A stretch of 64,000 nt of DNA from Entomortierella parvispora E1425 (taxonomy: Eukaryota > Fungi > Mortierellomycota). The position numbers and the translations under genes are program-made. This document shows positions 7,579 through 64,000 of this stretch, one piece after another; the stretch's first letter is position 1; each line of letters begins with the position of its first letter. The notes below the pieces were generated by a model. It was not told the origin of the DNA, searched no databases, and worked only from the letters and a program-made list of their open reading frames with translations. The stretch is taken from the NCBI GenBank assembly GCA_020891255.1, contig BQFW01000002.1, positions 3,906,001-3,970,000 on the forward strand, read 5' to 3'.

Positions 7579-9876
7579 TTAGAGGTAATGGATGCTGCCC
7601 TTCTGACTCTGAGGCGATCCCGATCCTGTGGTTGTATTGAACGGGTTTCTTCCAGAGTGACTACCATCACCGCCTGCAGAGCCAGAGTGACCGGGTGCAC
7701 TTCCACCGCTGGCACCATAGTTCGACGACGATGTTGCCTCACGACCATCTGAGGACGACTCGTGGTATCCATCATGGGCATGCACACCTGCCAGACCGGC
7801 CGATGCACCAATAGCAGCGCTCGTTCCAAAAGCCATGGGTGCCGAATGCAAGTTGTGGTTCGATCGGTTAGCTGGATGCTCCATCATCTCGGGTGCAACC
7901 ACAATATGACCAGCAACGGGCGCGCCACCAGGCAAATTGCGGGCCGAGGCGTGCGAACCATGGGATCCAGAGCCCTCTGGCTGACGCTGACCATACAAAT
8001 AACCGAGATCACCACCTGCACCAGCGCCAGCGCCGGCGGCCGCAGATCGAGACACGAACCGGTTGTTGGGATTTTGCATGCGACGCGACTGGCGCTTGAA
8101 AATAACAAAAGCTCCAACAATCAACGCCACCAATGCCAACGCTCCAACAACCACGCCCGCAGTGGCACCACCACTCCAACCACTCGTTTTGCTGGTGTCG
8201 TTACCAGACACTCCGCCGCCATTCGATCCAGGTCCGTTGGTTGGAAGTCCACCTCCGATTGTGAACAGCGTGCCGCTGTACATGGTCACGATAAGCGAGG
8301 TCTGGGTCAAGATGGGCTGTGTGTCTGTGGCACTGGAGATAGGGATCAGCACCGACTCGGTTGTCGGGACAATTACATCTGTAGTAGCGCTGAACGAGGG
8401 ATCAAGTGTAGCCGTGATCACAGGAGGAAGCGTCACGGTGGGCTCGATGGACGAGAGCGGGTTCGTGGTCACTGGGGGCTCTGTTGCACTAGCTGTGGGA
8501 GGAGCTGTGGCAGTCTCTGTGGGAGGAGCTGTGGCCGTTTCCGTGGGAGGGGCTGTGGCAGTCTCCGTAGGAGGAGCAGTCGCAGTTTCCGTAGGAGGAG
8601 CAGTGGCGGTTTCCGTAGGAGGAGCAGTGGCGGTTTCCGTAGGAGGAGCAGTGGCGGTTTCCGTAGGAGGAGCAGTGGCGGTTTCCGTTGCAGGAGCTGT
8701 GGGGGATCCTGTGGCAGTTTCCGTAGGAGGAGCTGTGGGAGATCCTGTGGCAGTTTCCGTAGGAGGAGCCGTGGGGGAACCCGTAGCAGATCCAGTGGGG
8801 GGAGCCGTGGGAGATCCAGTGGCGGTTTCCGTGGGAGCAACCGTGGGGGACCCAGTGACGGTAGGCGCAACTGTTGGTGATCCAGTAGCGGTATCAGTGG
8901 ACCCAGTGACGGTGGCGGTGTCTGTGGGTGCAACCGTAGGGGATCCGGTGATGGTTGGCGAGCCCGTTGGTGCAACTGTGGGAGATCCCGTAACAGATGC
9001 GGTATCCGTGGGTGTAACTGTAGGGGATCCAGTGGCGGTCGCAGTATCCGTGGCGGTTCCAGTGACAGTTCCAGTGACGGTTGCAGTATCTGTGAGAGTA
9101 CCGGTGATGGTTCCAGTGACGGTCGCAGTGTCCGTGGCGGTTCCCGTGATGGTTCCACTGACGGTTCCAGTGACGGTTGCAGTATCTGTGAGAGTGCCGG
9201 TGATAGTGGCAGTTCCCGTCAAGGTTCCTGTGCTTGTCAAAGTCATGGTCGAGTTGGTGGTGGCTGTGATGGTGGTGGTGACATTGGTCGTACCGGTGAA
9301 GGTGCTTGTGATAGAAATTGGCGATGTGAGGGTTTGGGTCGTAAGGGAGGCCTCAGTGCGGGTGGCTGTGGGTGTAAAGACCGAAGCCGAGTTGGTTCCC
9401 CCGGGGGCGACTCCATTAGTAGGTTCAGTGGTACCAACATCAGGGTCGACAGAGTCCGAGGCCTTGGGTGGGTCTGTACCATCCGTGGGCGTGGGTGTGG
9501 GTTCAGTGTCGACATTGTCCGAGGCCGAGGGTGTAGGAGCATCGGTATCGTCCGTTGGCGTAGGCTGTGAAGAGTCAGTGCCGTCCGTGGGCGTGGGTTT
9601 GGATATGACAAAATCGTCATTGGTCTTTGGGGGTTCAGTCTCCGTGACCTTCACGACATCATCATCGGACGAAACGTAAGTCTGCTTTGGCTGCTTTTGA
9701 GCGTGGGATGGAACACGGACCTCACGGGTCTTCTTTGCAGCCTTGGGGGTTTGGGGATCATGGGCTGGGGGAGTGGTCTTTGTAGGGGCGACCAGTTTTG
9801 AGCGGAGGACTGAGGCCGAGTGCTCAGCTCGACGGCGCACTGCGCCAGGCTCCCTGACCTTGACAGGAAGCGACAT
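7579..9876 (-). CDS. Thr/Pro-rich mucin-like single-pass membrane protein (Mid2/signalling-mucin-like architecture)
   Basis: 765-aa ORF with a T/P-rich repeat ectodomain, TM segment GATAGVVVGALALVALIVGAFVIF followed by KRQSRR, and a Gly/Ser-rich tail. The 5' end is uncertain. Confidence 0.8.
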   Translation of the reverse strand: MSLPVKVREPGAVRRRAEHSASVLRSKLVAPTKTTPPAHDPQTPKAAKKTREVRVPSHAQKQPKQTYVSSDDDVVKVTETEPPKTNDDFVISKPTPTDGTDSSQPTPTDDTDAPTPSASDNVDTEPTPTPTDGTDPPKASDSVDPDVGTTEPTNGVAPGGTNSASVFTPTATRTEASLTTQTLTSPISITSTFTGTTNVTTTITATTNSTMTLTSTGTLTGTATITGTLTDTATVTGTVSGTITGTATDTATVTGTITGTLTDTATVTGTVTGTATDTATATGSPTVTPTDTASVTGSPTVAPTGSPTITGSPTVAPTDTATVTGSTDTATGSPTVAPTVTGSPTVAPTETATGSPTAPPTGSATGSPTAPPTETATGSPTAPPTETATGSPTAPATETATAPPTETATAPPTETATAPPTETATAPPTETATAPPTETATAPPTETATAPPTETATAPPTASATEPPVTTNPLSSIEPTVTLPPVITATLDPSFSATTDVIVPTTESVLIPISSATDTQPILTQTSLIVTMYSGTLFTIGGGLPTNGPGSNGGGVSGNDTSKTSGWSGGATAGVVVGALALVALIVGAFVIFKRQSRRMQNPNNRFVSRSAAAGAGAGAGGDLGYLYGQRQPEGSGSHGSHASARNLPGGAPVAGHIVVAPEMMEHPANRSNHNLHSAPMAFGTSAAIGASAGLAGVHAHDGYHESSSDGREATSSSNYGASGGSAPGHSGSAGGDGSHSGRNPFNTTTGSGSPQSQKGSIHYL
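8495..8835 (-). repeat. Coding minisatellite: 24-bp units (APPTETAT) plus 36-bp variants (GSPTAPPTETAT)
   Basis: Repeated GGAGGAGCAGTGGCGGTTTCCGTA-like units on the + strand; repeats visible in the translation. Confidence 0.9.
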
Positions 9877-54037: not shown

Positions 54038-56529
54038 TTATTTGGTGTTGCCATCCTCGTCTCTGCTCTTCACCCAGTCGGGAGGATCGCCCACAGACAT
54101 GGTGACCGGGTCTACTAGGCCATTGTAGCTCTCATACACTGTGTAGTCAAAAGTCTTGAACTCTCGATCAATCATCTCTAGCTGGGCAAGAAAGCGGTCT
54201 TTGTCGCTCAAGTTGGTAAGGGCCGCTGCTGCCTCGATGTTAACTGCTAACGGATGCATGGCCGCCATTGTTGGTTTTGATATCTGGTGTCGTAGTCGTG
54301 GAGGTTGAGCATGCGGCTTCTGCTGTGGAATGATCTTTTGTCGAGACACCGAATGATCCTGAGGTATGGGGATGATTACGGGCGATGTGATTGCCATCTG
54401 TGGTTGTGTTGCCTGTAATGGATCTTGCTGCTGCTGTTGATCAAGTTGTTCATCCTGAAGATGTTGTTGAGGTGGTTGAAACAGACCTTGCTTCGGCCCT
54501 TTGGTGCCACTCGTAGGAGGAGAGCGGGCCTGTTCTGGGCTAACTGGGCTAGGCTGCATCCCATTGTCGTCATTAATGCCCTTGGATAAGACCTGGCAGC
54601 GCACCATCCCTCTCAGATTCCCTTCTATCCTCGCCGAGGCTGCTTTGCGGATCTCATGAATATTGTTGTCAGCCAACGCGATCCTTTCTCCTGGCCGCAT
54701 ATCCTCGGCCGGTGGGATGGCCATTGTCGGTAGCAACGAAGTAGCAGGGTGGTTACAAGCCGGCGATTGAGGGTTCACAGTCGCTAAAGTCCTCCAGTCC
54801 ACTCCGTGTGGGCCAGTGGTCATATCAGACGGAAAGGTCATAGACACTGGCAGTTCATGGTGAGCGCCTGGGTCGATTGGTGAAAGGGGTATAGATTGGA
54901 ATTGGGTTTGCCGTGCCAGGTCTGGATTGCTAGGCTTTGTCGAGAGAGGTGTCGTCTGCACTGGCGTTGGTGGTTTTTGGTCAATCATCGGCCAGAGGCC
55001 CGATTTCTTTTTTAGGAGAGCTGGCGATCTGCGTCCGGCAACTGAAGAGGCGTTCGAGGCACGGATCCTTTTCATGCTCTCCTCAATTTCCTGATTCATA
55101 GCTTCCATTGCACGTTGCGCCGCCGCTGCTTCCGCGATGGCAGCATTCTCCTCTGTCTTGCGCCTCTCATTCTCTTCTTTCATCGCCCTGTCCTTCTCTT
55201 TAAGCATCCGCTGAGCTCTTTGGCGGGTTGATCGATAGGTAAGCGGCTCATCTTCCATCAAGAGCTCTTCAAGATCGAACGATATGTCGAAGTTGGCGTC
55301 ATCTGCTGGTGGTTTGAAGCCAGGGGAGAGTTGCTTTAGCTCTAGCATATGCCACCACTGCTGCAAGTTCATCCTTGCCCGAAGAGCAGCGAATTCGAAG
55401 CAAGCGTGCAGTTGGATGCCCTGCATTCCACCGTGAATTCCTAGACGCTCTGTTGGATCTCGAGTCAAAAACTGGAGGACTGTTAGAGTTCTGTATGGGA
55501 TGTGTAGTCCAAACAAAGGTTTTGGTCACTTACACCTTGTATGGCTGAGATGCACTCACGCGATATTCCCTCCTGTGGGGGATACTCGATCGACCGATGG
55601 ACAATATCTCTTTTCAGATCCGCAATGTTTTCCGACGTGAAGGGTCGTTGATTGTAGATGCATTCATAGAAGACGACGCCCAATGCCCACCAATCCACGC
55701 TTGTTCCATAGCCTGTTCCTTTGAATACCTCTGGTGCCATGTAGGCAACTGTTCCCGATTGTGAGGTCAGAAACGGCCGATCCGGTGTCAATTTGCATCC
55801 AATGTTAAAGTCGGTCAGGTGTGCGTGCCCGTTCTCATCCAACAAGACATTGTCCGGCTTAATGTCTCGATGAACAATTCCAAGTGAATGCAAATGGCTG
55901 ACGGCTGAAGCGATCTCTGCTATCCAGACCTGAACTGTTGTCTCATCAAAAGTCCTCCTGTTGAGATGGAAACGAAGATCGCCCCCCATCCTAATTCAAG
56001 AGAAGAAAGACGACTCAATTTTTGCAAGTCCATGGAAAAGGAGCTGTCCCTGTCAAGAATGCCTGCGACTCTTACATGAGGTCCATACACATGTACATGT
56101 ATTCGTCATCCTGAAACGCGAAACGCATGTTCACGACGAACGCGTGGTCCAATGACTCGAGTATTTGGCGTTCCCGCAGAATGTTTTTGACCGCCTCCAT
56201 CTGGATGACTTGTGCCTTTGAGATGTATTTCAGCGCGTAGAGTTTTCCTGTCTCACGCCTCTCAACCATCCGCACCTAGAACACGCGAGAAGTCAGGCAT
56301 TGCTTTTTGCCTGTTATTCGCTCATTCCTCTCGCCTCACCTTTCCAAAGGAGCCACCGCCAATGACTCGAAGTAGTTTGAATTGAAAGAGGTTGACTAGA
56401 GATAGGAATGAGACACGGACGTTCAGAAGTGGGCCATCAATTCAATGCAGACGTAGAGCACCATAGAAGAAAATGCTTGCCTTCATTGGCAAAGACGCCC
56501 TCTTGGTCTCGACTGGACCCATTCCCCAT
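54038..56529 (-). CDS. AGC-group Ser/Thr kinase, YANK/STK32-like, 5 exons
   Basis: MGNG start, FKLLRVIGGGSFGK, LYALKYI, HRDIKPDN, family-typical DFN, GTVAYMAPE, DWWALG, NFDISFDLEELL. Confidence 0.9.
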
Positions 56530-56753
56530 TCAGTGATGGCTCGCTGCTGGTAGAGTGGACTAGGATGGTCGTTTTTGGGCTGGATTGTCCAGAGCGGTGT
56601 GAATGATGTAAAAAAACGAATAAAAGTTGATGGAGCTCGAATCAGGTTACACCGCAACGGCGAATGACTGAGTGGCTGTGCGGCAGCCGTTCGAATGGGA
56701 TTGCGCTCAAGGACCAAGTTTCTGCGCGCGCGGAGTGATGAATCCTTGGGGGA

Positions 56754-57008
56754 TAGGCTCGACCCAGCCCTCTCTCCTCACCACGTGACCGCCGCAGGTG
56801 GTCATGTCCTCGTAGAGGGGCTGGCGGCAAATGTGGCCCTTTACATAGGATGAATATAAAAGGAAGGTGCTTAAGGGTTGTCATTAAGGGTTTGTCGATC
56901 TGGGTCACATCGCTGTCGGTTGTCGAATCACAACGCCTCCCAACGATTCACCTTGTCACATTCCTTCCCCACATGCCATCCCATTCCTGACATGCCTTCC
57001 GTTTTCTT
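56754..57008 (+). repeat. Left terminal inverted repeat (255 bp)
   Basis: Reverse complement of 63389-63643; I found one mismatch by eye (ACATGCCATC vs ACATGTCATC). Confidence 0.95.
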
Positions 57009-57074
57009 CTGTCTTTCCTTTGTCATGTGTCAAAATTTAGTCAGAATATATTACTTGATGTGAAAACCCTCCTT

Positions 57075-57958
57075 CTAGTTGTTTTTGTTCCTCTTCCCGA
57101 ATTGCAGCCCACACTCGGTCGGCCTGTAGTACTTCTGGTCGAGGCGTGCTCGTCTCAATATCTGCGAAGCTGGGGGGCCACTAGAGCCGCTGGAGCCAAC
57201 AGAGGGCCTAGAAGGACTTCGTGCTTGATGATAGGGACTGGTCTCCCTAGGGCTGGGCCCCCTTGGATCAGATTTCATTTTCGAATTGTACTGGTGCTGT
57301 GCAAGAGAACTGGAAGTAGAGCTTGAAATCCACCTCTCGGTTTTCTCATGAATGCTAACAAAACCTGATAACCTCTCGTGCATTTGATAGGTCATGTTGT
57401 CCAAAGATTGCAGTCGACGCGAAAAATCCGCAGTATTTGAATCCACTTTCTCGTTGAGCTTCCTGAAGAGATCCACGACTAGATGTTGTGTCTTTGATTC
57501 TTGATCCGTAGGTGGTCTGTACTGCTCACTAGTGCCAAGTGTGGCGGAAGTAGAAGGGGGCGATGAAACAGCCAGAGTTGAAGTAGGTGACTACAAATGC
57601 CACAGGAGACAAAAAATAAAAAGACATGGCGTTAAAATCTACATTACAGTATATGATGCGAACTCGCATTAATCCATTTGTCATCAACACGACGTACCGG
57701 TTCTGAAGCTGGCTTGGGCAACAGTGTGGCGGAGTAAAACTTTGGTACCACATGGATATTTTTCTCCGATAACTCTTGTATCAACAGGGGCTTGATGAGA
57801 GTACATGCCTTTTGGAGCTTGCGCCCTTCAATGTGGTCCTGTAGAGTTTGAGATCTCGAGAAATCCCTCCCGCAGACGCATACGTGTGCGAAGAATTGAA
57901 TCTTAACATCACCCTTGGGAATGGTGATAGTAACACTGAATTCAATGGGCTTGGGCAT
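57075..57958 (-). CDS. Transposon-internal protein with a C2H2/C2HC-like zinc finger and a coiled coil, 2 exons (about 255 aa)
   Basis: Exon 1 MPKPIEF...CVCGRDFSRSQTLQDHIEGRKLQKAC; GT-AG intron 57529-57647 (phase 2) joins in frame to the 57075-57476 ORF (LFRKLNEKVDSNTADFSRRLQSLD). Confidence 0.6.
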
Positions 57959-58225
57959 GATGTTTTTGCGCTTGATGAAAGATGGAGGTGAAGTGATGCT
58001 GTCTGCGGTGTGGAGAAGAGAATTGATGAGGAAAATAGAGAAAAATGAGAGCGTATCATCCCCTTTAAGTATGTTTTTGCAATTGGGAATGCGATCAAGT
58101 ATCGAAGGCACACAAAGCGGTCCACGGCGCATTGTTGGGCTTGATGTCAGTGCGCGAACGAGAATAGTGCTGGCGCGTATGCAAAGAGTGCGTGATCAAA
58201 GAGGCACTGACACATGAACAATTGT

Positions 58226-58526
58226 CGCGTATGCAAACAGTACGCAACAAAATCGCATGGGAATAAAGGGGGGCCAGTGAGTCCTGGCGCGTATGCAAAC
58301 AGTACGCAACAAAATCGCATGGGAATAAAGGGGGGCCAGTGAGTCCTGGCGCGTATGCAAACAGTACGCAACAAAATCACATGGGAACAAAGGGAGGACA
58401 GTGAGTCCTGGCGCGTATGCAAACAGTACGCAACAAAATCACATGGGAACAAAGGGGGGACAGTGAGTCCTGGCGCGTATGCAAACAGTACGCAACAAAA
58501 TCATATGGGAACAAAGGGGGACAGTG
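58226..58526. repeat. 62-bp tandem repeat array, about 5 copies
   Basis: Units start at 58226, 58288, 58350, 58412 and 58474. Consensus CGCGTATGCAAACAGTACGCAACAAAATCRCATGGGAAYAAAGGGRGGMCAGTGAGTCCTGG. A degenerate partial copy lies near 58171. Confidence 0.95.
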
Positions 58527-58614
58527 CGTGTGAAAACAGTGCCCGATCAAAGGGGTGCTGGACAGAGCTGATTTCATTCATTCAGAATGAAGGTTGAGAC
58601 GAGGAACAATGCGA

Positions 58615-58700
58615 ACACCAAGGCGAAGAACAAGGTGAAGGACAAAGCGAAGGACGAAGCGAAGAACAAGGCGAAGAACAGGGCGAAGAACAAAACGAGG
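58615..58700. repeat. Degenerate 12-bp tandem repeat (AAGGCGAAGAAC-like)
   Basis: About 7 imperfect units inside the transposon. Confidence 0.75.
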
Positions 58701-58847
58701 ACAAAGCGAAGAGGATATGAAAGGAAGAGGTGGGCGGCGCCCGAGACGAAAAGAGAAGTCCCTGGACACGGAGTGCAGGCCGCACGACTCAACTTCTTGT
58801 CGATGGTCGCACGTCCAATTCTCGAACAATGAACCTTTCTCCCTCCC

Positions 58848-58935
58848 ATGTCGTCCCTTGTCTTCCTATGCCGTCCCTTGTCTTTCTATGCCGTCTCTTG
58901 TCTTCCTATGCCGTCCCTTGTCTTCCCAGGCCGTC
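58848..58935. repeat. 20-bp tandem repeat (ATGCCGTCCCTTGTCTTCCT) x about 4.5
   Basis: Four near-identical units plus a partial unit, upstream of the transposase ATG. Confidence 0.9.
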
Positions 58936-59101
58936 CTGTGCCATACGCTATCTTCCCATGCCTTCCCGTAACGTCCGCTCTCATTTCATGTCTTCCATGA
59001 AGCGCTCTCCTCCTTTCATCGTTTTCTCAAGCTTCGAACTTCACTCCATCGACATTCTGCCTTACGCAAACACCTGTTGTTGAGCCCTCGTCTTTCGCAA
59101 A

Positions 59102-61461
59102 ATGAATCCTTCACCAACGAAGCGACCATTCCAGTTCGTTGAAAGCCTGTCTGTTCAAGAGATTGTTTTCGAATTCATCGGACAACTGGAGAGGCATCAG
59201 GTCCCATTATTAGCTGCCTTGCGAACTTTGTTCAATTCGACTCATCCAGGCACTGAAAAGGTGTTGACCTATTTCTATCGGGACGGCGGGGCAGCAGAGG
59301 TTGTCGGCATTTGGGCAGCAACGAACAAGGATAAATCATTCAACAAGGCTGTCACGGCCATCGTCGTCAAAAATGGAGGTGCAGAACTCAACCGTTTGTC
59401 CAAAGTTGAGGAACTTCGACATCCAGCAAACGCGATCGACCTCGACAAACTCCAAACATTCGAGCTTGACTTCATTCAACAACACATCGAGGCCTGCGCT
59501 CCAACTGTTCTTGAAGTTATAAAAGGACTTGCCTCTGTCAACAGCGTCAAGAAATCGGCTTCCACGATTGTGATGATATGTAGCGTTCTCCTCTTTCTTC
59601 GGAGCCAGAAGTCGAATCATTTCCAAATGATGATGGGCCTCTACCTTTACAGCTGTGGAAGTCCAAGTGCCGTGGTTCACCTTCTGTCCAAGGCTTCAAT
59701 CTCTGTGTCGCACACCTCAGTTTTGCGTGCTCTCAAGGGTAGGTGTTTCTGAACCTCCCATGAATCGTACTTGAAAGCGCCTGTGCCATTGATATTTTCG
59801 TAATCTTAACGATCGCTATAACGCTGCACGCACCATAGGAATGACGGATGCCGCGCTGGAGAAGATTCGTAAGGCTGTGGTTGACAAGCCTTGGTATCTT
59901 GTCTATGACAACATCAACTTTGCGAGTCGAAAATCGGACCAGCGGATCGACAATTCTGACTCATTTGAGAGTGGCACCATGGCTACAGTTGTGATGATGG
60001 ATGAGACGATTAGCCGTGATGATATCCGGCTATCATACCACCGACTTTGCCTCTCAGACCTCATACCTGGCGCTGACAGCTACGGGCACATGCAGGCTGT
60101 CACGGAGAACGCTCTACTAAAGGTTCTTGCTCGGTCATCCAAGGGCTATGATTGCTGCCGCAAGTCAGATCCAGCACGAGACAAACTAGCCACAGTGAAA
60201 ACCGTCGCTCACCCATTGCCTTCAATGCATATTGATCAGTCAAGCGTCGCCGGAAACCTGGAGGTGCTCAATACCATTATGGAGAAGACGCTTCGACTAC
60301 CTCAGGCGTGGTTCGACGACAATCGAAAAATCCTAGTTGCAGGCGACCAGCTTACCATCAGCAGGATCTCGACGGCAATGGAGTACAAGGCAGTCGATGT
60401 CTCACCATTTCATCGATTACAGTTCGCAATGCCTTGGTTACAGCTTTTTCATCTGGAGATGGCGTTCTGTGGCCTCATTCTCCAAACTCATTGGGGTTTA
60501 GCAATTCAGCCAGGGTCGTTACATTTCAACACAGTTTTTCTGAAGCGGAAGCGGGTCAGCCTGAAAGATTTTGATTTCCACGCTGCGCACGAACTCCTGG
60601 AACACACATTTGAGGCGATCGTCATACGAGTTTGGGAAGTCTATCTCGTAGATCTACCAGTGGCTGCTGAAGGGATGAGCAGTGATCAGCTGCAGGAGAT
60701 TGTAGCAGAGAAGGTCGGACACATTGTGAACGATCTCATATCGCCAGATCAAGATGAACTGCTTTATCACAGCCGTACAAACAGGAACATGGCCCTCCTT
60801 CTTCGACACCTGCTTTACTACTTCGAGCTCCGCGCAGCAATCAGAGCCGGCGACGTTGGCAGGATTGAGGAGTCGCTGAGATGGATCACGATCATGTTTC
60901 AAAATGGCATCAACAATAACTATGCCCTGGAGCTGTTGCGTGTTCATTGTGCCATCCGATATACATTGACCCCCCGAAATGAAGAGAAGATTCATGGCAA
61001 CTTGGTTAGTTAACACTAAGGGCAAAGAAAATGGATGGATTCCGACCGACATGTATCAGGAACACAACAACAAAATAATGAAGGCTACCTTTGAGTTGAA
61101 AGGGAGCAACTCAAAGTGGGATACGCGAGAGTCATCGATATCGGTCAACATCCGCACCTTTGAGGCAATTAGGAAACAGTTTGACGAATGCTTCAATCGG
61201 ACCCACAACTCAAGTTACCATTCAGCTGTCTCAGCAGAGAAGGATATAAATCAGCTCGTGTTGAAATTTCGCCAGTGCAATATTCTGAGCGAAGATTTTA
61301 GTGCCGGGGACCCTGATTTCGAGATAGCTTTGGACAAGGATCTGTATGCCTGTGGCCTGGCACTCTTGGTTGAATCGAGAATTGATAATTTTAAAAAAAC
61401 AGGGACATTAGATGACAACGAGGATGAGGATGAAGATGCTCCAGATGATCCTTTTCAATAA
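59102..61461 (+). pseudogene. Academ-family DDE transposase with one intron (59739-59838) and a +1 frameshift at 60970-60975
   Basis: YLVYDNINF (putative D1), LVAGDQLT (D2), QLFHLEM, WIPTDMYQEHNN (E). Removing one C from the C6 run gives continuous YTLTPEMKRRFMATWLVN. Confidence 0.85.
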
Positions 61462-61645
61462 ACTTACTGCTCTTGCCTCCGAGTAGAGGAGCAGGAAACT
61501 AATTAATGTTTATTGCGGGATTGCAGTGCTGAAGAGCTCTTCATACGAGGGCATAGTCAGTATGAACCGTGGGTCAGGGTACATTATGTTGGTTATGGTA
61601 CGTTGGTATCATGGGCTGACTACCCCATCTAATTGCTGATCTATG

Positions 61646-63193
61646 TCAGTGGTCCCAGCTTTCAGACATAAGCCGAGCCACCTCGGAACGAGTTTTCCGT
61701 ACTGTATCCTGAACGAGATCAGAAAGCTCCTTGAAGTGGCTTGGTTTCCAAGGAGACCAACCGACGAGGGTTTCCTTCACGTCTTCTGCCCGTAAAATTC
61801 TGGGAGCTCTCTTGATAAGCTTCATAATGCAATCGTCGGATAGCAACACCTCGGGTTTGAACTGCAAGAAGGTGGTAAGAACAATCTCATCGTAAATCCC
61901 TTTACGCCATTTCTTTAGCGCCTTTCCTAGAGCAGCCCTCTCCTCGTAGTCAAGTAACTCGCCCTTGCGGATGGGTGGAAGAGGCTTGTTTCGGCGAGAG
62001 GTAAATGGTGGTAGTCCAGCAGCGTGATAATCCTTTTTACAAATATCGCAGCAGTTTTCGGCAATAACTCGGGGAGCATTGCGAAATATGTTGTTAAGAA
62101 CCTGTCGACGACATGTCTTTGTCGCCAGGAATTCATTAAGCTGTACGTCCTCGTGCTTGGCATATTGTTGCTTGAGTGTACAGTATACAATGCCATATCC
62201 TTGCATATCGGGGCTTCGCGCCGCACGTCCAAGTCGCTGAACAAGCGATAAGACAGAATCCGGAACTCCAAACTGTATAACACAATCAACATCACTGATA
62301 TCACAGCCCATTCCGACCGCGTCGGAAGCGAAAAGGACTCGAACTTCACCCCTCCTGAACTTCTCCATAGTGTCAGACTTGTATTCGTCAGACAAGATGG
62401 CAAAGTAACTTGCAAACTGGCCATTTGGTCCGGAGAGGTTGAGCAGGTGCTTATGTGCTTTGTGTAGATCCCGAATCAACTCAAAATAGACAATGGTTTT
62501 CCTCTGGTCCGTCAGGAGAAATTCGAGAGTGATGGCCTGTGGTGAATGAGTCCGCATCACCATGAGCTTCACATTGGGCCTGTCATTGCCGGTATTAATG
62601 ACTGGGACATTGAGTGCAAGGTTGAGGGATGCCTTGACTGTATGAAGAACGTGTGGGGGCAGAGTGGCAGACATTGCTACGAAAGCAACATGAGGTGGGA
62701 GCCGAGGGCGTAATAGTCCGAGCTTTGAGTAGTTTTTCCTGAATTTTGCCCAGGTGTGGATGCAGTGGGCCTCATCAAGGACAACTGCACGTAGCTGATA
62801 GTGCCACCGTGGACTGGACCAGAGTTCCTCCACCAAGTCGTTCTCGAAAATGACTTCTGGTGTCATGAAAACTGCTCGGAAGACACCAGCGGCAAGCTTG
62901 GCAATTTCACCGGGATTGATTGACTGGTCTCCACCGCCTAAGAGGCATAGACTTCTAATACCAAGGCTTTCCAGTTTTCCATGCTGCTCCTTCATGACAG
63001 CTCGCAACGGAGACACAATAACAATAACACCTCGGTCCCAGAACAACAACGGCAAGAAGAACACCAGCGACTTGCCCCAGCCGCATGCAGCAATGAGAAC
63101 AATGTCCTTTCCATGACCAATGGATTTCGTTACTTGCAACTGCTCGCTCTTTAGTCGGAACCCGAATTGATTCCCAGCAAAGCTCCATTGCAT
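61646..63193 (-). CDS. Transposon-encoded RecQ-like SF2 helicase (start may be at 63254 across a frameshift)
   Basis: Motif I AACGWGKS, Ia VSPLRAVM, II VLDEAHCI, III MSATL, V ASDAVGMGCD, VI QRLGRAAR, Zn-binding CRRQ..CCDIC, HRDC-like tail. Confidence 0.9.
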   Translation of the reverse strand: MQWSFAGNQFGFRLKSEQLQVTKSIGHGKDIVLIAACGWGKSLVFFLPLLFWDRGVIVIVSPLRAVMKEQHGKLESLGIRSLCLLGGGDQSINPGEIAKLAAGVFRAVFMTPEVIFENDLVEELWSSPRWHYQLRAVVLDEAHCIHTWAKFRKNYSKLGLLRPRLPPHVAFVAMSATLPPHVLHTVKASLNLALNVPVINTGNDRPNVKLMVMRTHSPQAITLEFLLTDQRKTIVYFELIRDLHKAHKHLLNLSGPNGQFASYFAILSDEYKSDTMEKFRRGEVRVLFASDAVGMGCDISDVDCVIQFGVPDSVLSLVQRLGRAARSPDMQGYGIVYCTLKQQYAKHEDVQLNEFLATKTCRRQVLNNIFRNAPRVIAENCCDICKKDYHAAGLPPFTSRRNKPLPPIRKGELLDYEERAALGKALKKWRKGIYDEIVLTTFLQFKPEVLLSDDCIMKLIKRAPRILRAEDVKETLVGWSPWKPSHFKELSDLVQDTVRKTRSEVARLMSESWDH

Positions 63194-63388
63194 TGTTGGG
63201 GATCTCCTGAATGTTGAAGGAGGGATTAACGTCGGAGGGATTTAATGTGTCCATTTGTCGCCTGGTCAATTGGTGCTACTTTTGTAAGAATTTAATAAAA
63301 GAGGCTGATGGAAAATAATACTGTGAAAGACATGGAAGACAACGGATGGTATGGGAAGGAAAGAAAGGGAGGGAAAGAAAGGGAACAT

Positions 63389-63643
63389 AAGAAAACGGAA
63401 GGCATGTCAGGAATGGGATGACATGTGGGGAAGGAATGTGACAAGGTGAATCGTTGGGAGGCGTTGTGATTCGACAACCGACAGCGATGTGACCCAGATC
63501 GACAAACCCTTAATGACAACCCTTAAGCACCTTCCTTTTATATTCATCCTATGTAAAGGGCCACATTTGCCGCCAGCCCCTCTACGAGGACATGACCACC
63601 TGCGGCGGTCACGTGGTGAGGAGAGAGGGCTGGGTCGAGCCTA
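63389..63643 (-). repeat. Right terminal inverted repeat (255 bp)
   Basis: Reverse complement of 56754-57008; ends CTA and is followed by the TSD. Confidence 0.95.
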
Positions 63644-64000
63644 CTTGGGGGACTGGTCCTTGATAGACCCTTAAGTTTTCTCCATAAGATCAGCCCCCGG
63701 AGGAGTTGGCTGAGTTCTCTCTTTCTCTATCTCCAATCAAAATGGTTAGTCACGTGGAGTGCAATCCATCGCTGACCGGATCCACCCAGGATCGCCTGCC
63801 ATCCATCCATTGCGACACCAGTGGCAACAAGCGAACCATCCGCATCGGCAGTACGATCCAGTTCAAGATCAGGAGTGGAAGCGCCAATATCATCATCGAC
63901 ACCCAAGACCGACATGAACGAAAAGATGAAAATAGGATGTGACATGGAACAAGTCATCCAACACAGCCATGACACCCGACTTTGCATTGCGAAAAGGACC

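Follow-up and report, generated by a model that had tools for sequence, protein, structure and literature searches.

A transposon of the soil fungus Entomortierella parvispora holds a small gene flanked by its left TIR and its transposase gene: does this gene add a third component to AcademH elements, or is it the possession of a single family? The locus falls in a 64,000-nt part of contig 2 (hereinafter the window) of a 38.9-Mb genome assembly whose encoded proteins are deposited under that species name. An earlier note on this DNA had read the gene as a spliced zinc-finger gene and proposed that it would define a three-component AcademH system. To our knowledge, AcademH is among the least-studied groups of eukaryotic DNA transposons, and we know of no mechanism that has been shown for its transposition. 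Its members reportedly encode a transposase and a helicase only; in one sublineage from animals, the transposase also bears a fused PHD finger.

The element and its assignment to AcademH

The gene is embedded in a DNA transposon of 6,890 bp at 56754-63643, which is bounded by 259-nt TIRs and 9-bp TSDs and is present in three copies in the genome (Table 1). These copies are 99.8-100% identical (n = 3), and the aligned homology begins and ends precisely at the TIR tips. The differences between them are limited to indels of one or a few bases, almost all of which fall within short homopolymers or next to them, with no substitutions in any of the three; the indels probably reflect faulty polishing of Nanopore data where a sequence occurs in several copies. 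One of them lengthens a C-run at ~60970 by one C and thereby breaks up the transposase frame of the window copy, and the other two copies hold an open frame of 555 aa. Since no substitutions separate the three copies, a within-genome dN/dS analysis is uninformative on selection. The E. parvispora AcademH family with the small gene is very young and presumably active.

Beside the small gene, the element codes for a superfamily-2 (RecQ-like) helicase and for a transposase with the DUF6589 domain (PF20231), which we take to be the Academ transposase—an equation that the one paper found to name DUF6589 does not state. We compared the element with four marks of AcademH. First, a superfamily-2 helicase gene of its own lies inside the element. 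Second, AcademH is marked by TSDs of 9 or 10 bp: here, they are perfect 9-bp repeats at the window copy and at the contig-9 copy (ATCTTTCAG), and 8 of the 9 positions match at the second contig-2 copy. Third, TIRs delimit multiple copies with sharp edges. Fourth, a gene content of transposase and helicase alone is found in the sister families of the same genome and not here, where the third gene occupies 57075-57958. By its helicase, its TIRs, and its 9-bp TSDs, the element fits AcademH. PMC10045372 gives TSDs of 9 or 10 bp for AcademH versus 3-4 bp for AcademX, and PMC10799480 includes the Mucoromycota among AcademH hosts.

Table 1. Features of the small-gene element, in positions of the window
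Feature	Position	Strand	Basis or remark
Left TSD, CTTGGGGGA, 9 bp	56745..56753	.	Same 9-mer again at 63644-63652
Left TIR, 259 nt, tip TAGGCTCG...	56754..57012	+	Inverted repeat I1, 99% complementary; three-copy homology breaks off exactly at 56754
Small gene, exon 2, residues 88-258, including stop 57075-57077	57075..57590	-	100% identical to residues 88-258 of P0001 / EMPS_06689
Predicted long helix / coiled coil, residues 116-180	57312..57506	-	AF2 helix, heptad pattern, P0002 alignment
Intron of the deposited model, 107 nt, GTACGT...TTTAAC...TAG	57591..57697	-	36% GC; join 57698/57590 yields the 258-aa GenBank protein
Small gene, exon 1, residues 1-87	57698..57958	-	Translation; agrees with the GenBank protein
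Degenerate C2H2-like finger, H25-x-C27-x-C29-x12-H42-x9-C52	57803..57886	-	zf-C2H2 14.9 bits, E 0.039
Tandem array, 62-bp units	58161-58532	.	Divergent intergenic region
Tandem array, 12-bp units	58588-58707	.	Divergent intergenic region
Tandem array, 10/20-bp units	58824-58993	.	Divergent intergenic region
Transposase gene (DUF6589, PF20231), several exons	59102..61461	+	Pfam E 6.6e-65 and 7.1e-21
Superfamily-2 (RecQ-like) helicase gene	61646..63193	-	DEAD E 7.4e-23, Helicase_C E 6.3e-18, weak RecQ_Zn_bind match
Right TIR	63385..63643	-	Inverted repeat; copy-alignment boundary
Right TSD, CTTGGGGGA	63644..63652	.	Matches left TSD

On one side, the element adjoins a protein-kinase gene (exons ~55483-56275, minus strand) and, on the other, downstream host sequence. 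Elsewhere in the genome, a MITE-like non-autonomous relative (G000:C11:271586-271711 (+) / 271779-271904 (-)) contains the outer 125 bp of the TIR twice, in opposite orientations; the two copies are 83-85% identical to the TIR of the small-gene family and lie ~70 bp apart. Further solo fragments of the same TIR are scattered over contigs 4, 5, 9, 11, 16, and 18.

Structure and coding status of the small gene

The small gene is a two-exon ORF on the minus strand (ATG at 57958-57956, stop at 57075-57077), with the left TIR on one side of it and, on the other, the transposase gene, whose plus-strand start is at 59102. Thus, an intact ORF of the spliced type within the TIRs, divergent from the transposase gene, is present as the earlier note had claimed, and the peptide that it quoted, CVCGRDFSRSQTLQDHIEGRKLQKAC, occurs in the translation. 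The details of splicing differ. The splice from 57698 to 57590 joins 87 and 171 residues into a protein of 258 aa, rather than the ~255 aa first estimated, which equals the GenBank hypothetical protein EMPS_06689 / EMPS_02079 (P0001). The predicted intron of this model (57697-57591) has a GTACGT donor, a branch-like TTTAAC, a long pyrimidine tract, and a TAG acceptor, and its GC content is 36% versus 47-50% in the exons. The intron proposed earlier, which runs from GTAATG at 57647 through the AG at 57530-57529, also keeps the phase; however, its GTAATG donor is weaker, and the GenBank protein matches the other intron instead. As the primary model, 57647-57529 was hence rejected, and 57697-57591 looks better from its splice signals. 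The genes of this assembly were predicted by AUGUSTUS with cDNA derived from RNA-seq (PMC8759367).

Upstream of exon 1, the frame stays open for 58 further codons, to an ATG at 58132 (57959-58132, minus strand), and the GC3 of this extension is 0.48 versus 0.55; the deposited model begins at 57958. The earlier note had named an annotation of the ORF in Repbase Academ consensus sequences as grounds against its reading; this holds in part, as GenBank already lists the ORF, labeled a hypothetical protein and not assigned to a transposon.

An exhaustive phmmer search of 1.84 billion representative proteins recovered, beside the query itself, a single relative (E = 4.9e-15, 41% identity). This is P0002, an unnamed singleton protein of 180 aa on a Logan contig of 1,761 bp. 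It starts at the helix and aligns to residues 117-245 of P0001 (the helix and a Ser-rich segment), leaving the finger exon uncovered. With BLASTP, the two proteins are 49% identical over residues 116-187; the motifs HERL and IHE-x2-ERWIS are kept, and conservative substitutions are found along the helix. Such conservation at the protein level marks the gene as coding rather than as an ORF open by chance. When exon 2 and P0002 served as queries in word-based searches of 5.8 billion proteins, self matches alone came back, and a metagenome scan with the alignment of P0001 and P0002 gave no match. On this comparative evidence from sequence, the small gene is a genuine coding sequence and nearly an orphan.

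Several observations could nonetheless be read as signs of a non-functional ORF, that is, of a decaying or fortuitous frame made into a model by the gene predictor. Over half of the protein is of low complexity or disordered (163 of 258 residues with pLDDT <50 in the AF2 single-sequence model, whose mean is 50.5), no Pfam family is matched at its cut-off, and one copy of the gene is frameshifted. Against this, P0002 keeps the helical segment, the intron signals are good, and both exons are open in the coding frame alone, with 1-11 stop codons in the remaining five frames of each exon. The frameshift itself, a G added to a G-run at 57171 in the other contig-2 copy, lies within a homopolymer of a Nanopore assembly; it is probably an error of that kind, although it could be real decay. 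Homopolymer indels of this type alter deposited protein models, and this copy is annotated as a protein of 271 aa (P0003). A non-functional frame is therefore a reading that we consider very improbable.

Predicted architecture of the protein

The finger region of exon 1 holds a segment, C-G-R-D-F-S-R-S-Q-T-L-Q-D-H, that resembles Zif268 fingers in the part comprising their knuckle and recognition helix, with the core residues F33 and L39 at canonical positions. All profile matches to it are sub-threshold: the Pfam zf-C2H2 family (PF00096) scores 14.9 bits against a gathering cut-off of 25.2 (E = 0.039), and Zif268/EGR1-type PDB chains are matched at E = 0.016-0.05 over residues 27-47. A profile search of PDB with the two-sequence alignment yielded nothing beyond these weak Zif268 matches, and the ESM Atlas scores (0.86 or less) lean to C2H2, which we treat as a lead only. 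In the single-sequence AF2 model, a strand at residues 18-25 and a helix at residues 37-45 are predicted, and the finger region has pLDDT <50.

Compared to classical C2H2 fingers (Zif268/EGR1, PF00096), the segment keeps the core C-G-R-x-F-S-R-S-x-x-L-x-x-H but departs from them in three ways. First, its first ligand pair is C-x-C (or H-x3-C), as opposed to C-x2-4-C. Second, Arg46 takes the place of the second His, and the next candidate ligand is a Cys nine residues on; the arrangement C27-x-C29-x12-H42-x9-C52 does not match the PF00096 ligand pattern C-x2-4-C-x12-H-x3-5-H. Third, the protein has one such finger alone, and this scores under the family cut-off. The spacing first reported, C-x-C-x12-H-x8-C, needs correction in its last interval (H-x9-C), and the call of a zinc finger is too strong for matches of this grade. 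Since the finger lacks the canonical ligand spacing, binding of zinc or another metal, as well as of DNA, by this degenerate version is doubtful.

The remainder of the protein is encoded by exon 2, for which a coiled coil and Ser/Pro-rich sequence had been claimed; both are borne out by prediction. Residues 88-115 constitute a Ser/Thr/Pro-rich linker, followed by one AF2 helix at residues 116-180 (block-mean pLDDT ~50-74). Along this helix, the hydrophobic fraction is 0.61-0.67 at the heptad a/d positions versus 0.19-0.22 at the others, and the ~60-residue helix is probably a dimerizing coiled coil. Residues 181-258 form a Ser/Pro/Arg-rich basic tail with a net charge of +10.

Tandem arrays and a possible accessory factor

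The repeat arrays that had been noticed between the two genes are indeed three in number, and together (58161-58993) they fill most of the 1.1-kb spacer between the small gene and the transposase gene. A gene divergent from that of the transposase and separated from it by 830 bp of tandem arrays would suit a small protein that is a dedicated accessory transposition factor, one that attaches to the arrays or TIRs and either recruits the transposase or regulates it, making this a true three-component family. The finger-like, coiled-coil, and basic-tail features are typical of DNA-binding adaptors and point in the same direction, as do the presence of the gene within the TIRs in 3/3 copies of a very recently mobile element and the absence of a host paralogue from the genome. 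However, the arrays are present at one end of the element only, and they have no k-mers in common with the TIRs above shuffled controls. Moreover, the finger lies under every family threshold and is without a fourth canonical ligand. The small protein might conceivably bind the 62-bp array, as the earlier note had proposed.

Gene content of other AcademH families

A search of the genome for DUF6589 gave 26 matches, which fall into three families, and the small gene occurs only in the three-copy family. Family 1 (7 copies) has TIRs of at least 509 bp, with a helicase gene and an 833-codon transposase frame immediately next to them. In family 2 (9 copies), 370-600 bp separate the 1,063-bp TIRs from the helicase and transposase ORFs. 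Both families carry two genes only, and in the copies examined in this genome there is neither a trace of the third gene nor room for it. Their transposases are 39% (family 1) and 34% (family 2) identical to that of the small-gene family. Likewise, a complete metagenomic element, L054, with 5,342 bp between its TIRs, codes for a transposase and a helicase only. Since the sister families and L054 manage with these two genes, the small gene should be regarded as accessory or cargo and not as a core third component. Thus, the three-component system proposed for AcademH is contradicted by families 1 and 2 and by L054, and, across the families compared, only one has the small gene, which does not belong to the general equipment of AcademH elements.

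The TIRs of family 2 are unusually long and 98.8% identical, and they hold ORF-like stretches, apparently including short tandem repeats (loci L048/L021, G000:C5:492101..., and L046/L017, G000:C6:406198...). At their tip, they have the motifs ACCCAGCCC and AGAGGGGCTGG in common with the TIR of the small-gene family, despite the transposase identity of 34%.

Beyond this genome, relatives of the transposase with 80%, 66%, 65%, 64%, and 61% identity are found in metagenomic/SRA contigs, and versions 50-57% identical are found in Mortierella polycephala, Podila, and Dissophora globulifera. Transposase relatives in the 50-80% range are thus numerous, versus one relative of the small protein, a contrast to be read against contigs of 2.5-7 kb and the fact that small eukaryotic genes often go uncalled. 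This is suggestive of an absence of the small gene beside the closer transposase relatives. In the sequences compared, we do not see the conservation with the transposase across related elements by which an accessory protein is recognized. That other AcademH families of the same genome multiplied without such a gene, and that one relative was found although related transposases are many in the databases, both speak against a dedicated accessory transposition factor, which we regard as unlikely.

Extra coding sequence of a different kind is present in L052, an AcademH element of a fourth family, from a soil metagenome, with TIRs at 2862-2970 and 9625-9730 and a transposase 40% identical to that of the small-gene family. 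Here, ~2.1 kb of additional plus-strand coding sequence (L052:7780-9500 (+)) lies between the helicase gene and the right TIR, and L056, an internally deleted derivative of L052, keeps the extra ORF (L056:2103-2531 (+)). The ORF features a D...E-A-K motif and a weak match to HSDR_N (PD-(D/E)xK nuclease; E = 0.008 in L052 and 0.098 in L056). In E. parvispora, a 41%-identical relative of this ORF (E = 2.2e-10) is found at G000:C18:22712-22954 (+); ~2.4 kb away lies a fragment that is 87% identical to the TIR of the small-gene family (fragments at C18:25322-25412 and C18:12737-12827). The C18 locus may be what remains of a related element that carried a nuclease-like gene.

The unrelated extra gene of L052/L056, at the other end of the element, suggests that cargo is tolerated, and the small gene might itself be a passenger: a host gene or fragment captured by the ancestor of the family, with no role in the life cycle of the element. 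Its sporadic presence among AcademH families agrees with such an origin, and P0002, its sole relative, could be a host gene. What weighs against capture is that the donor cannot be traced. A six-frame search of the 38.9-Mb genome found no paralogue outside the three copies of the element (the next-best match has E = 0.05 or worse), and there is no annotated homologue in any sequenced Mortierellaceae proteome of the HMMER library. Further, no direct or inverted repeats flank the small gene as a nested insertion would have left. The earlier note had asked whether homologues always lie within Academ TIRs; in this genome, the gene is in all three copies of the element, with no free-standing paralogue. 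We judge a passenger without a role for the element to be unlikely as well.

A putative role for the small protein

The reading that we favor, with moderate confidence, is that of a genuine, spliced, lineage-specific accessory or cargo gene of one young AcademH family, the product of which would be a non-catalytic dimeric nuclear adaptor that affects the element. As its architecture suggests, the 258-aa product, with its degenerate finger, Ser/Thr/Pro linker, coiled coil, and basic tail, would act as a dimeric nuclear adaptor binding nucleic acid or chromatin. It would take no part in the cut-and-paste chemistry. Expression of the gene would start in the divergent promoter region, filled with the arrays, that it has in common with the transposase gene, and the adaptor may modulate the element's own expression or its transposition.

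A wider proposal, which we regard as doubtful, is that the AcademH elements of Mortierellaceae possess a variable cargo slot by one TIR, occupied by family-specific accessory genes that tune targeting, regulation, or the evasion of silencing. The slot would be filled by the finger/coiled-coil gene here and by the PD-(D/E)xK-like nuclease gene in L052/L056, and the finger protein would recognize the 62-bp array.

As a lineage-restricted hypothetical protein alone, the product of the small gene is of modest importance. For experiments, an AcademH element that has gained a gene offers a useful handle, though it leaves the general understanding of AcademH unchanged. An intact, very young family in a culturable fungus with public RNA-seq data under accession DRA013164 offers a practical test system for the transposase, the helicase, and the optional extra protein. 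Further, the extra gene indicates that AcademH elements can acquire and mobilize added coding sequence, which bears on the spread of novel or orphan genes by fungal transposons.

Comparison with known systems

Like AcademH elements at large, the element is TIR-bounded, fungal, and low in copy number, with transposase and superfamily-2 helicase genes and 9-bp TSDs. It differs from them in the third, unrelated small gene and in ~830 bp of internal tandem arrays, both on the transposase side. A parallel is the L052/L056 family, in which ~2 kb of added coding sequence likewise sits between a core gene and one TIR and is transcribed toward that TIR; however, the extra protein there is unrelated to P0001, and it lies at the helicase end and not at the transposase end.

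Among other DNA transposons, the Myb-like protein of PIF/Harbinger and TnpA of En/Spm are accessory DNA-binding proteins that are conserved across superfamilies and required for transposition. The small protein has no sequence or domain kinship with either of them and is limited to one family. Nevertheless, it resembles both in being a small, non-catalytic, and presumably DNA-binding protein encoded beside the transposase gene inside the element.
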